Shown here: piece after piece, positions 57,149-64,000 of the stretch
Layout: the number at the start of each line of letters is the position of its first letter
Numbering within the stretch: the first letter of the stretch is position 1
Origin: Histomonas meleagridis 2922-C6/04-290x
Taxonomy: Eukaryota; Protista; Parabasalia
NCBI GenBank assembly: GCA_020184695.1
Contig: JAANOX010000029.1
Coordinates: 163,628 to 227,627 of the forward strand
Length of the DNA: 64,000 bases
Direction of reading: 5' to 3'
Notes under the pieces: model-generated
Told to the model about the DNA's origin: nothing
What the model saw: only the letters and a program-made list of their open reading frames with translations
Database searches by the model: none
Made by a program: the position numbers and the translations under genes

Positions 57149-57221
57149 ACCTCCGTAGCTCAACGGTTAGAGCATAGGACTTTTAATCCTGGGGTTGCGG
57201 GTTCGAATCCCGTCGAAGGTG
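57149..57221 (+). tRNA. tRNA-Lys(UUU)
   Basis: Cloverleaf: acceptor ACCTCCG/CGAAGGT (one C-A mismatch), D-arm GCTC/GAGC, anticodon arm TAGGA-CTTTTAA-TCCTG, T-arm GCGGG-TTCGAAT-CCCGT; followed by T-run. Confidence 0.9.
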
Positions 57222-57224
57222 AAT

Positions 57225-60200
57225 TTTTTTTGTTTTTTTGATGGAGAGTTCTATTTTTGCTGAGAATTCGCCTTTAGCTCCGTTACAGGGAGAGGAATCG
57301 AATGATACCCTTTTCTCAAAATTCGAATTTTCATCAGATAGATTATTTGGAAATTCAAAACTTCAGACGAACAATTTTACAGGAATAGAGGGTCATACAT
57401 CTGAATTACGATCAACAAGAAACGAATCTTTAATTACGAATAATTATGAAGATATTTACATTTTAAAGTTCGACCATGTACTACAAGATAAGATTAATAT
57501 ATGGGATATTAATGAAAATTATTATAGAGATAACAAAGAAATTATTACAGATCGAACATTACAAAACTTTTTACAAAATTATATAATTAATAAAGATTTT
57601 CCCAACAAAGAAGAAATTAAAAGAACTATTATCAAAGCAATCAAGAAACAAATACCAAAGCCTAACATTTGGTTACAGCAAAATTTATTATTAATTCATA
57701 ATTTTTTAAATTTCCCAATTTCTCAATTATTCAAATTAAATGAGTTTCGTGAAATTCCATTACTCGAACCATTTTGTTGTTCATTAGTTCCAGAATGTAA
57801 TTTTTTCACAAAAGATTTTCAAATACTATCAAAACATTTATCAGAAGAACATGATATTGACCCTAATCAAGAATTACTCTTTCACGAAAGAATCATACAA
57901 AGATTATTGACTAAAAACAAATATATTATAAAATCAAAAAATTATAAAAGATTCTGTCCGTTTCCAAATTGTTATAAAATTATTTCTAACAATTTTGAAT
58001 TAATCAACCATATAAATCAAGACCACAGTTCAGAAATAATTATAAATTCTTTACAAACCGTCGGGTTATTTTGGACGTTAATCTTTTCATGGACAAAAAC
58101 TTACGGAAAATTACCGACAGCATTAAATTTATTAAAAACACAAGTTGATTTTTGGAATATTCAATAATATTAATCCAGATGCTTTGGAGAGAAATTTATT
58201 TAATTAATGAACATTATGAAAACAAAGATTTTACTGAAATTGATTTACCATATTGGATATTAATCATCGAACAAAATAACATCAATATTGAGATCCCGAA
58301 TATATGTTCTTATCGAGGTTTAATTTTACCACCAGATACTTTTCGAATTATAAATAAAACATTATCAATCAGACCTGACACATTACAATTCTTAAATAAC
58401 AAAATTAGACTAAATAAAAACATTTCTCATGTTACACAAGTTAAACAATATCCAATTAATGTTCCTAATTTCTCTATTACACAGAAAAACATAAATTGTG
58501 ATTTACCAGTAGTAAAAGTTAAAGAAAAAATTATTGATATTCCAGACTTCAAAATCAATAATGAAGAAATTAATGTCGTTATACCTTATTACAATAAAGA
58601 AGACAAGTTAATTACAATTCCTAATTTTAAAATTAATAAAGAAAATTATTTAATACCAATTCCTAAATTTAAGAAAAAATTGGTACCTATTAAAATACCA
58701 GAGTATGAGAAACAAACAGAAAATTTTATAATTCCAATACCTAATTATCAACAAGAAGATTTCAAAATAGACATACCGAATTACCAACAAAATTTACAAA
58801 ATTATACAATACCAATACCTCAATACAACCAAGAAAAACTTTTTTAGTTAATATTCCAAATTATCAAAATCAAATACAAAACATTAATATTCCAATACCA
58901 AACTATCAAAATCAAGTACAAAATATTAATATTCCTATTCCGTATTACAATGAAGGAATTGTATACCATTTAATATTCCACAGATTAAAGTTAATGAACA
59001 AATTATAGAAATACCAAAAATTAAATTTGTAGAAAAAGATATCAATTTTCCAACACCAAACTATAATTTACCCAATATTAATATCAATATAAATCTAAAT
59101 AATAACGAAACTCAAAATCAAAATAACAATGATAATCAAAATCAACTAAACTCAAATATTACAACCTTAGGATTCAATAACAATAATATTCCACAAGAAA
59201 ATCAAAATCAAATCAATAACATCAATTTAAATAATAATAATAATAATAATCACAATAATGGAAATAATAATAATATTAATGATGAAGAAGATTTAACACC
59301 AGAAAATTTATTAAATGATATTAGAAATGCGAATACTAAAGAAGAAATTAAATTAGTAATTAATAAATGGAAGAATAAAGATTTAAACGAGAACTTATTC
59401 ATGTGCAATAATAATAGATTTAAAATACCAATTTTAAATATTATAGCATTCGAAAAAAGTTGGCCAGGTGTAGGACCTTTTGTATGTACACAAGGAGATG
59501 GAGAAGCATTTACATGTGTACCTCATTTGAAATATCATGAGAAACAAATACATAATAAAACATTTCCAGGTTGTACAATGTTAGAATTTCTAAACTTTTT
59601 AAGTTTAAAAGATAATTATTGGGAACAAGTTAATTTACAAGACCAACATCAAAGTTATCATAAGAATCTTTATTTTTGCTTCTGTCCAAATTGTGATTAT
59701 TTTACTATTATGAATCAGGGTTCATTTTCTTCACATATGAAAACCAAACACAAATATATAGTTGATAAAAAATCAGAAATAGGATGGATTTGGGCGACTA
59801 TTAAATATTGGATAAATCAAGTTAATAGAACACCAAATATTAAAGAATTAATGAAAAAAAGAAATGGTTTATAATGTGGTTATTGTAAAAAGACAATTAC
59901 AGCTAATGAAGGAAATATAAAATTACATGCATTTTCAATGCATAGTGATTCAAGAATAAAAGGTACAATTATTACAAAACAAAAGATTAAAATTAAATCC
60001 ACAATATTTAGAATCCTGTTACAAGAACAAATTGATGAGATTGAAAATGAAATTAAAGTTCAAGAACAATTAACAGATGATAACAATAATAATCACTTCA
60101 ATGATAGAAATATTATTATTAATCAACAAAATAATGGAGAAATTAATAGAAATAATAATATTATTATACAAAATCAAGATCAAAGAGTCATTCAACAAGA

Positions 60201-63200
60201 ACAACCAAATAATCAAGAAGTACAACAAAATAATAATCTAGAACAACAACGAGAAGAACAACTAAATAATAATCAAGAAGAACAACAAAATAATAATCAG
60301 GAACAACAACAAGTAGAAAATATAAGAATGACTCAAGAAGAACAACAAATTATTTTAGAAGAAAGAAATAATTTATTAATAAAATGTAGAAAATGGTTAA
60401 ATAGGGTAGAAATAGAAGAACAAAATGAGATTCATTTACCTAAACTTACTAAAAACTTTAGACAAAAACTTATTTATCCCAATCAAAGAATGTATGAAAA
60501 ATAAAATAATTCCAATATTAAAGAAATGTTTACCAATAAATGAAAGTGAAACAGAATGGATAATCTTTGAAGGAGGATTAGCCAAAATGAATTTATTAAT
60601 TAGAAAAACTATTAGAAAAACTTTACATATTCCTTTAGAAAAGATGTTAGATAAATCTATCAAGAAGAATAAAATCACAGATAGAAAAAAAGATACAATT
60701 AGAAGACAAAACAATATAATTAGAAATTTATCAGAAATTACTAGTTATATTAAAAGGATTATAGAATTAAAAGATAAAACACCTACACAAACTATATTAA
60801 ATACTATTTCAAGTATTGAAATAGAAATAGTAAATATTTTAAAGAATACTAATAATGATATATTAAATAAAATAATTGGAGGAAATAACATTGAATATAT
60901 TCGAAACATTATTAATGATAATCCAGAACATAGAGAAAATAGATTAAATTATATTTCAGCTACATTAGAAAATATTCAACAAGATAATATGAATATTATA
61001 TCAAAGAAATATAAAAATATAACTCAAAACATGTATCGAGAAGATCCAGTTAGAGCTATCAGATGGTATATATTAAATGATCCTATACCAGAATGTGATT
61101 TAAATATAGAAGAAGTTGGGAATTATTATAAAATACAATTTGAGAAAATTGCGAATTTTGAATAACCAAAAGAAAATAGTTTATGGGACTTAAAAGAAAT
61201 GATTGACGAATAAAATAGAGATTTTTTATTAAATAATCTATTAGATAAGGATTTAATTAGAAATTCAATAAGATCAAGATCAAATATGGCTGCTAATGGT
61301 CCAGATGGAATTGGAAATCCTATATGGAAAATAGATATTAAATCAACTACTAAAATTATTAAAATGATTAATGAACAAATAATTAAATTCGGAAAATTTC
61401 CACAAACTTTAAAGAATTCGAAAACAATATTATTATATAAAAAAGGTGATCCAAAAGAAATTAAATCTTGGAGACCTATATCAATATCAAATACATTGTA
61501 TAGAATTGTAATGTGTCAGATATCAAAGATTATCCAAATTATAAATCAAAATTGTAACTTCATTAATCATGTACAAAAAGGATTTAAAGCTGGTATTAAT
61601 GGTATTTCAGAACATATAGCAACTATAAATGAATTAATTTCTGAAGCTAAAAGAAATAAATCTTCAATCATTATTACTACACTAGATTTTTACTAATGCT
61701 TTTGGGTCTGTTCCTCAGAAAGCTATTTTATGCAGTTTAAAGAAAAGAGGATTCCCAACGAAATTTATAGAAGCAATTAAAGACTTATATGATAATTCTT
61801 ATACTACTATCAAAGTTGGAAATAAAAAAACTGAACAAATTAAAATAAATAGAGGTGTAAGACAAGGATGTCCTTTATCACCTTTATTATTTAATTTATG
61901 CTTAGAACCTTTATTAAAGAAAATCCAGATTAAACATAAACTAGATGGTGTTCCAATTAATACAAATGATAATGAGGTAATATATTTTAATATTCAAGCT
62001 TATGCTGATGATATAGTCTTGATTTCTCAAACCCCTGAAGGTATGCAAAACATGTTAAATACAGTAGAAAAGTTCTGTAAGAAGAATGATATGTCAATGG
62101 CTCCACAAAAATGTAAAACTTTAAGTTATATTAAAGAAAATAATCGAAGAGTTACATTAAATTATAAATTACAAATTCAGAATGAAAATATTCCTAATTT
62201 ACCTTTATTAGAAGCTTTAGAATATTTAGGTTCATCTGCAGTAATTAAATAAAAAGGTAGTTTTGATCATACTAATATTAGATTATATAAAAATTAAAAA
62301 TGAAATCATTAAAATTATGAAATCCTCATTAAAATTTAATCAAAAGATAGATGTGATAAAAAGAATGATTCTTCCTGAAATAGATTTCGAATTATTAAAT
62401 GGTTATTGTTCAGAGAAAGAATTAAATAATATTGATACAATGATTAAGAAATTAATTATGAAGGATTGTAAAACTAATAGTTTACCTAAAGAATTATTTT
62501 ATACTAAATGGAGTGATGGAGGTTTAGGATTACCAAAATTATGGGAAAGAGCTAAAACTTTACAAATTAAGAACTTCCTAAATATTATAAAATCTTTTGA
62601 TCCAAATTCTAGGAAATTATTCAGACAATCTTTTATTAATGAAATAGATTATAGAAAGATCGAAAAAGATTACAATTCACCCTATTTAAATATTCCAGTT
62701 GATGAGAATAATATAATTACACAAATTAGTCAAAGCAGAACAAATTGTTTATTCTCAAGGACAATTAAATCTTTAGCCAAATTAAAAATTGGTATGAAGA
62801 TGAACTTTAATAAAGAAACTGCTAAAATATGGGACAATAATTCAAATGATATTAATAAAATAATAGTTGATGAAACAAATATATTAAAAGAATTAAATAA
62901 TATTATTAAAAACAGACATGGAGAAAAATTAAGAGCAAAACCTATCAAAGGTCACACATTTAACACATTACAAAATTCTCCGTTATCCAATTTCTTCATT
63001 GGGAATTATAAAGCTCCAACTGCTGACTCTATTATACATTTCGCCGTAGTTTCAAGAACAAATAATTTGCCTACAGGCGAAATTTTGTATAAAAATGGAA
63101 TCGGCGATGGAATTTGTCATAAATGTAATAACAATTACAATGATTCCCTCATGCACAGATTAAATGGTTGTATTAATTTAAGAAATAAATATACTATTCG

Positions 63201-63983
63201 ACATAATGCAATCATTAAAGAAGTATTAAAAGAAATTAAACCAAATAATAATATTATATTTAATTATGATAGGCCAATCAGTAAAAGAAATATAAGATTA
63301 GAAGGAAACTCCAGAAATCTTAAACCGGATGTATGGTGGTTTTCCAGTAATTATCAAAATCTTAAAATTATTGAAGTAACGTCACCATATGGTCAATTAA
63401 CTGACGACCCAAATAGTAATGAAAGAAAATCAACTTTAGAGTTAAGAAGAATAGAGAAGATTAACAAGTATAGACAACTAATTGAAGATTGTAGGAATAC
63501 ATTTAACGTCCAAGTGGAATTTTATGTTATAGTAGTATCCTCGTTAGGTGCAATTCCTGAAGAAACAATTCATGAATTAAAACTATTATATAATAATGAA
63601 AGAACAGCGAGATTAGTAGCAAAAAGATGTTCAGTAGCCGCTTTAAGAGAATCTATGTTGTTATTATATAAGAGTTTTAAAGAGTATAACGTACTACAAA
63701 ATAATAATGATACTACTATTAACATTCAGCCAACATCATCAAATGAAGAAGATTCAATCGATGATTTACAAGAAGATGTTGGTGTAAATCAAGAAGAACT
63801 TGTTGACGAAAATGTTGAGGATGGGTTAGGGCATCCCCAACATGACGATCAATAAAGTCCTTAAAAAAAACCGACGAGATTTGGTTTATGAATAAAACAA
63901 GAGTCAAAGTGAAGTAGAATAAGGCGGTCGCGTCTATAATTAAAGATAATATCACTAATAACATACGATAATGAATAAACAAG
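57225..63983 (+). mobile_element. RLE-type (R2/NeSL/CRE-like) non-LTR retrotransposon inserted at the tRNA-Lys 3' end, with disrupted ORF
   Basis: RT motifs GPDGI, WRPIS, QKGF, DF(T)NAFGSV, GVRQGCPLSPLLF, AYADD (62001-62012); CCHC CHKC...HRLNGC, RHNAI, KPDVW, IIEVT, K..KY endonuclease; flanked by direct repeat TCCCGTCGAAGGTGAAT (57208-57224, 63984-64000). Confidence 0.92.
57241..63855 (+). pseudogene. fragmented single retrotransposon polyprotein (zinc fingers, IPxY repeats, RT, RLE)
   Basis: ORF-track pieces 57238-58167, 58152-58847, 59401-59874, 59938-60504, 60425-61165, 61286-61696, 62019-62252, 62263-63855 join via frameshifts and in-frame TAA stops. Confidence 0.85.
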
Positions 63984-64000
63984 TCCCGTCGAAGGTGAAT

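Follow-up and report, generated by a model that had tools for sequence, protein, structure and literature searches.

An R2-like retrotransposon family found behind tRNA-Lys(UUU) genes in Histomonas meleagridis

How does the 3' end of a tRNA-Lys(UUU) gene come to stand twice at the end of a contig of the parabasalid Histomonas meleagridis? The question is raised by a 64,000-nt stretch of contig JAANOX010000029.1 (C29; positions 163,628 to 227,627, forward strand), here called the window. The 17-mer TCCCGTCGAAGGTGAAT is found in it at exactly two sites, 57208-57224 and 63984-64000, while 0 are expected from 100 shuffles, and the spacing between both copies corresponds to an insert of 6,759 bp. 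The insert very probably belongs to a family of single open reading frame (ORF), R2-like retrotransposons without long terminal repeats (non-LTR), of the restriction-like endonuclease (RLE) type, which inserts only into tRNA-Lys(UUU) genes, probably by a mechanism of the target-primed reverse transcription type.

The left copy of the 17-mer lies in a tRNA-Lys(UUU) gene at 57149-57221, called by both ARAGORN and Rfam (RF00005, 67.7 bits). It spans T60, the last base of the T-loop, the 3' strand of the T-stem (61-65), the 3' strand of the acceptor stem (66-72), the discriminator G73 and the trailer AAT. The original prediction, made from the window alone, had placed the repeat on both sides of the element and had read it as T-stem 3' strand, acceptor strand, discriminator and three trailer bases. 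The two exact sites and the two tRNA calls agree with it on both points.

To determine where else the element occurs, we searched the genome assembly (281 contigs, 43,133,364 bases). Copies of more than 90% identity were found on C29, C153, C61, C154, C237, C79, and C14, and an older copy (76%) on C61. Each of the seven younger copies starts directly after a whole tRNA-Lys(UUU) gene and AAT (GAT on C154), as was foreseen when the upstream gene was said to be kept intact. The old copy on C61 sits behind a decayed tRNA-Lys relic. All eight 5' junctions are thus directly behind a tRNA-Lys(UUU), one of these tRNAs being decayed. At the 3' side, all five junctions carry the 17-mer, four of them at internal ends and one at the start of C155. 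Past the 17-mer, the 3' ends on C153, C61, and C155 each run into a different flank, and the one on C14 continues into the opening 165 nt of another copy, in a head-to-tail stack. The upstream flanks of the copies are unrelated, save for two old locus duplications. Copies at unrelated sites were looked for genome-wide, and the element search found none away from a tRNA-Lys gene. The predicted specificity for tRNA-Lys(UUU) is borne out by these junctions and their unrelated flanks.

We also examined which tRNA-Lys genes are used. Of the 12 intact tRNA-Lys(UUU) genes in the genome, seven are occupied and five empty. Genes with A59 and an AAT trailer are occupied in seven of nine cases, and those with G59 and another trailer in none of three (exact p ~0.045, our own calculation). 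A further 16 tRNA hits at 88-89% identity, taken to be the other lysine isoacceptor, were not matched by the element search. At an empty site on C17, similarity to the T-run was considered as a possible element remnant and rejected, BLAST giving no match.

The gene before the window copy has an acceptor-stem mismatch, C5 opposite A68. Among the other genes, C5 is confined to the three empty ones of the G59 type, while the 3' part of the window gene (A59, AAT) is of the targeted type, making it the one gene of the 12 that combines both types. Either a point change or gene conversion at the time of insertion could account for it. Elsewhere, two tRNA-Lys genes on C79 (113642-113714 and 127387-127459) lie in an inverted duplication that is 97% identical over 574 nt. 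Homology of this pair stops about 12 nt past the 17-mer, and one gene is empty while the other has a rearranged element array. The occupied tRNA genes on C154 and C61 share 85% identity in the adjoining 150 nt upstream, pointing to an older locus duplication.

The right repeat had been described as cut by the end of the window. The repeat is there, but the end of the window is the end of contig C29, and the suggested inspection of sequence beyond 64000 therefore stops at a contig boundary. A candidate continuation is offered by the start of C155, which opens with the element's final 17 nt and the 17-mer (positions 1-34 form the junction) before unique DNA. C155 may continue either C29 or C237, which also ends within a copy.

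The features of the tRNA gene and the element are as follows, all on the forward strand and in window coordinates.

57149-57221, forward: intact tRNA-Lys(UUU) gene immediately 5' of the element, C5 opposite A68 (ARAGORN, Rfam, comparison of 12 genes)
57208-57224, forward: left 17-bp repeat, T60-G73 of the tRNA and trailer AAT (repeat search)
57225-63983, forward: retrotransposon of 6,759 bp, sense strand A-rich; no LTR, terminal inverted repeat or poly(A)
57225-57240, forward: 5' end of the element, T7-G-T7-G, a T-run resembling an RNA polymerase III (Pol III) terminator directly behind the tRNA
57241-58167, forward: first piece of the ORF, an N-terminal extension that holds zinc-finger module A; its C2H2-type fingers lie near 57775 and 57955 and precede a W-rich motif (FOXP-CC zinc-finger match, 2e-07)
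58593-58958, forward: coding repeats in units of 36-42 nt (~12-14 aa, IPxY/F-type; repeat family D1)
59401-59943, forward: zinc-finger module B, which duplicates module A (E 2e-05) and has its fingers near 59677 and 59875
60208-60349, forward: low-complexity linker rich in Q, N and E
60425-61165, forward: domain preceding the reverse transcriptase (pre-RT domain), common to all relatives (E 1e-10 to 1e-40); the R2 profile match starts N-terminal of the reverse transcriptase
61286-62249, forward: reverse transcriptase (RT; RVT_1) with motifs NAFGSV, QGCPLSP and YADD, split by a frameshift near 61687-61696
62263-63114, forward: thumb/linker region
63115-63171, forward: CCHC zinc knuckle, C-x2-C-x9-H-x4-C (invariant C607, C610, H620, C625)
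63199-63558, forward: restriction-like endonuclease with RHN, KPD, IIEV and EKxxKY (C-terminal stretch against R2, independent E-value 1.1e-39)
63856-63983, forward: 3' untranslated region (UTR) of 128 nt with terminus AATAAACAAG, conserved in sister families
63984-64000, forward: right 17-bp repeat where the contig ends, an orphan piece of tRNA 3' sequence (repeat search)

The copy on C153 has an 877-aa open frame that matches RVT_1 of Pfam at 1.8e-36 and has R2 proteins as its best solved relatives (2.7e-43). The best PDB matches are R2 and then LINE-1 ORF2p. The profile built from 31 relatives gave a match to R2 at 1.8e-165, divided into two stretches, of which the second (profile positions 741-999 against R2 residues 919-1165, independent E-value 1.1e-39) covers the CCHC knuckle and the RLE. 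Invariant in the 31 relatives are C607, C610, H620, C625, R635, H636, P677, and D678, with K721 and K724 nearly so, and the CCHC and RLE motifs stand at 63115-63558 in the window copy. The RT, CCHC and PD-(D/E)xK-type endonuclease motifs noticed beforehand were recovered here as well, and the matches confirm an RLE-bearing non-LTR retrotransposon of R2-like architecture. An apurinic/apyrimidinic endonuclease (APE; Exo_endo_phos) domain had no match at E<=0.1 in the scanned pieces, some short stretches between pieces being left out. A Ulp1-type protease (PF02902) was not matched in any piece scanned; this protease occurs in some NeSL and Utopia members and is an optional feature of the NeSL clade.

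The element terminates in ...GAATAAACAAG with no poly(A), as had been noted before. The element has neither LTRs nor terminal inverted repeats, and the 17-mer (repeat family D17) is the only terminal repeat; an LTR retrotransposon and a DNA transposon were both rejected for lack of any further terminal repeat. Rfam found no ribozyme, the tRNA being its sole match, and the 3' UTR does not fold better than shuffled sequences (z = -1.29). The first ATG is at 57241, leaving a 5' UTR of only 16 nt, and the start of T-run, G, T-run and GATG is common to this element and a sister family at tRNA-Arg. An ORF start about 16 nt past the left repeat had been claimed; the start stands, but the ORF in the window copy is split into at least eight pieces in three frames. 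In the N-terminal region, four to five C2H2-type fingers are spread over modules A and B, which are duplicates of each other with the repeats of about 14 aa in between. The N-termini of the relatives begin at module B, which makes the first ~750 aa an extension particular to the tRNA-Lys(UUU) family.

The window copy is a dead member of the family. All three full-length copies, the window copy included, are broken by frameshifts and stops. They are 96-97% identical with 31 indel events between them, some of single bases in homopolymers, which could be Nanopore errors, and others of 2 to 68 bp. None of the copies can be read through from end to end, but wherever one is interrupted at least one of the others is open, which points to a single ancestral ORF of ~2,200 aa. 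Between two copies, the ratio of nonsynonymous to synonymous differences per site (pN/pS), calculated from small counts, is about 0.2 in the RT-to-RLE part (62293-63852) and about 0.9 in the N-terminal extension (57241-58146). The low value in the RT-to-RLE part indicates that part of the divergence arose while the lineage was functional.

For insertion we propose the following route. The N-terminal C2H2 zinc-finger modules would recognize the DNA of the tRNA gene, and the C-terminal restriction-like endonuclease would nick the antisense strand at the point facing 59|60 of the T-loop. Reverse transcription would be primed there from the exact 3' terminus of the element's RNA (AATAAACAAG, which lacks poly(A)), and the sense strand would be cut 17 nt downstream, past the trailer AAT, giving a 17-bp target duplication. 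The positions and order of the nicks (59|60, then 17 nt downstream) are those that the junctions would imply under target-primed reverse transcription. What is visible today is a whole tRNA gene, the element with its T7-G-T7 start, an orphan tRNA tail of 17 nt, and the earlier terminator. The T7-G-T7 start can terminate Pol III. As insertion recreates the target, a new copy can land before an old one, as in the head-to-tail stack on C14.

The right-hand 17-mer might instead be copied from a read-through RNA tail of the donor tRNA, with insertion just past AAT and little or no duplication. The RNA of R2 carries downstream target sequence, and the right-hand copies are all AAT or AGT whatever flank follows. 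The AAT trailer is also common to nine of nine genes of the targeted subtype, the two empty ones included, while their other flanks differ. Those two empty genes, however, have AAT with no trace of an element, which is most simply explained if AAT is native. Three families also keep the element end AATAAACA(A)G right before the tail of their own tRNA, fitting duplication from a fixed nick, and we regard copying from a tail as unlikely. Even less can be said for a spread of the copies with their tRNA genes by segmental duplication rather than by repeated insertion, which is highly improbable. Shared upstream sequence is found for the C79 pair (96% over 400 nt) and for C154 and C61 (85% over 150 nt), but the remaining upstream flanks and all downstream flanks are unrelated, and the C79 pair consists of one empty and one occupied gene. 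Purifying selection in the RT-RLE part between copies is as expected of an actively copying lineage.

It is also very unlikely that a Nanopore-based assembly produced the repeat and the broken frames as artefacts. The assembly was made from Oxford Nanopore reads with Illumina polishing (PMC8529796), the second window repeat stands at a contig end, and several indels are single bases in homopolymers. The same structure is nevertheless found inside contigs C153 and C61, and many of the lesions are stop codons or involve the gain or loss of 2 to 68 bp.

Several points weigh against repeated site-specific insertion through target-primed reverse transcription. The intact master copy that the original prediction advised looking for was not found in this assembly. 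Clear 5'-truncated copies, typical of target-primed reverse transcription, were not seen either, the partial copies being 3'-truncated or rearranged. The order and positions of the cuts are drawn by analogy with R2 and from the junction geometry, and the assembly offers no filled and empty pair of one same locus for comparison. The element begins with a T-run, so the duplication could exceed 17 bp by a few T. Finally, read-through of the full element by Pol III was rejected as implausible given 12 sense-strand runs of T5 or longer, two T7 among them at the very start.

The tRNA-Lys(UUU) family has close relatives at other tRNA genes. An element on C227, 49% identical in the RT-RLE part, ends in ...AATAAACAG followed by the last 14 nt of tRNA-Arg(ACG) (excerpt L025, 2500-2920). 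A full tRNA-Arg(ACG) is present ~290 nt further on, followed by another element start (T-run/GATG). The junction is at the same T-loop position as in the Lys family. A pattern search for 3' junctions, whose hits were mostly noise in this AT-rich genome, gave a similar junction at C45:130503-130539 (reverse strand), with ...AATAAACAA, then TCCCTGCGGGACCA and a T-run, adjoining an RLE match. Like the Lys family, these sister families have the end AATAAACA(A)G, the T-loop junction and the T-run start, and their RT-RLE parts are 49-51% identical to it. They differ in their tRNA targets, in tails of 14 nt, and in the shorter N-terminus of the relatives. Sister families in this genome also retain RT-RLE frames that are open.

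In a FastTree phylogeny, built without labelled clade references, the Lys and Arg families group with a C56 family and one metagenome protein in a clade with support of 99. They belong to a wider clade of 29 rows (support 100) made up of Histomonas and metagenome proteins, which is weakly supported (80) as sister to a group with arthropod R2-like and Ulp1+RT proteins. The matches listed in the protein search included no Trichomonas protein. The elements found in a metagenome scan were all distant non-LTR ones (22-34% identity), with a tRNA in none of the 60 scanned. One metagenome protein of 594 aa, P0100, is 70-82% identical to the middle of the element (module B and the pre-RT domain), indicating that a close relative exists outside this assembly.

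R2 targets 28S rDNA and inactivates the unit that it hits. The Histomonas element is similar to R2 (R2Bm, R2Tg; 8gh6, 9dou, 9nl2/3) in having what was probably one ancestral ORF, with zinc fingers at the N-terminus followed by RT, linker, CCHC and RLE, an exact 3' junction with no poly(A), and insertion into a multicopy RNA gene. It differs in that its target is tRNA-Lys(UUU) rather than 28S rDNA and is kept whole via the 17-bp duplication. Its presumed ancestral ORF of ~2,200 aa is also roughly twice that of R2, its 5' UTR is 16 nt, and it falls in a clade of its own in the tree.

Lineages of RLE elements that target tRNA genes were said to be known already, and examples are found in the literature. 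NeSL-1_TV of Trichomonas vaginalis is reported to be a tRNA-Pro-specific RLE-type non-LTR element (Kojima & Jurka 2015, PMC4640811). Like the Histomonas family it has a parabasalid host, is of the RLE type and is specific for a tRNA gene, but its target is tRNA-Pro and not tRNA-Lys(UUU), a comparison made by description. The planarian elements LIN15_SM (tRNA-Arg) and LIN25_SM (tRNA-Glu) are NeSL-related, tRNA-specific RLE elements with an animal host (PMC4640811). LIN15_SM joins its tRNA further 5' than the Histomonas element does, as drawn in S6 Fig of that paper, and nothing in that drawing points to a tRNA that is kept whole.

Safe landing at tRNA genes is also known from other kinds of mobile elements. 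The TRE elements of Dictyostelium use tRNA genes as safe landing sites, being of the APE type and inserting some way off from the tRNA gene. The Dada elements likewise use tRNA genes as safe sites (PMC8869645) but are DNA transposons, unlike the RLE retrotransposon of Histomonas.

In a literature search, with Repbase and Dfam outside its reach, we found no paper on Histomonas non-LTR elements or on tRNA-Lys(UUU) as a target. As tRNA-specific RLE elements are already published, what is added is a new family and target, not a new mechanism. The tRNA-Lys(UUU) family is well supported and, as set apart by the literature rather than by Repbase or Dfam, is a new family and target among the known tRNA-specific RLE elements. 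The H. meleagridis genome paper (Palmieri et al. 2021, PMC8529796) lists only 23 retroelements of 2.6 kb in total, from which it follows that this family was not annotated. The annotation can now be corrected, the three full-length copies alone amounting to ~20 kb with partial copies excluded.

A broader reading is that the Histomonas elements are a distinct RLE clade that has switched repeatedly between tRNA targets, of which Lys and Arg are shown, while keeping one cleavage geometry (T-loop 59|60), rebuilding the tRNA and bringing its own Pol III terminator. In its boldest form, the choice of target would depend in part on a read-through tRNA tail of the element RNA that pairs with the nicked target, or on a zinc-finger module that can be swapped. 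We hold this reading to be doubtful, but if such tail pairing or swappable fingers were at work, retargeting would be simple. The tRNA-Lys(UUU) family is a natural example of a retrotransposon with a tRNA gene as its safe harbour, the sequence of the gene being kept and a new terminator supplied. Together with its sister families, it provides closely related proteins with different short DNA targets, useful for retargeting R2-type enzymes for gene insertion.

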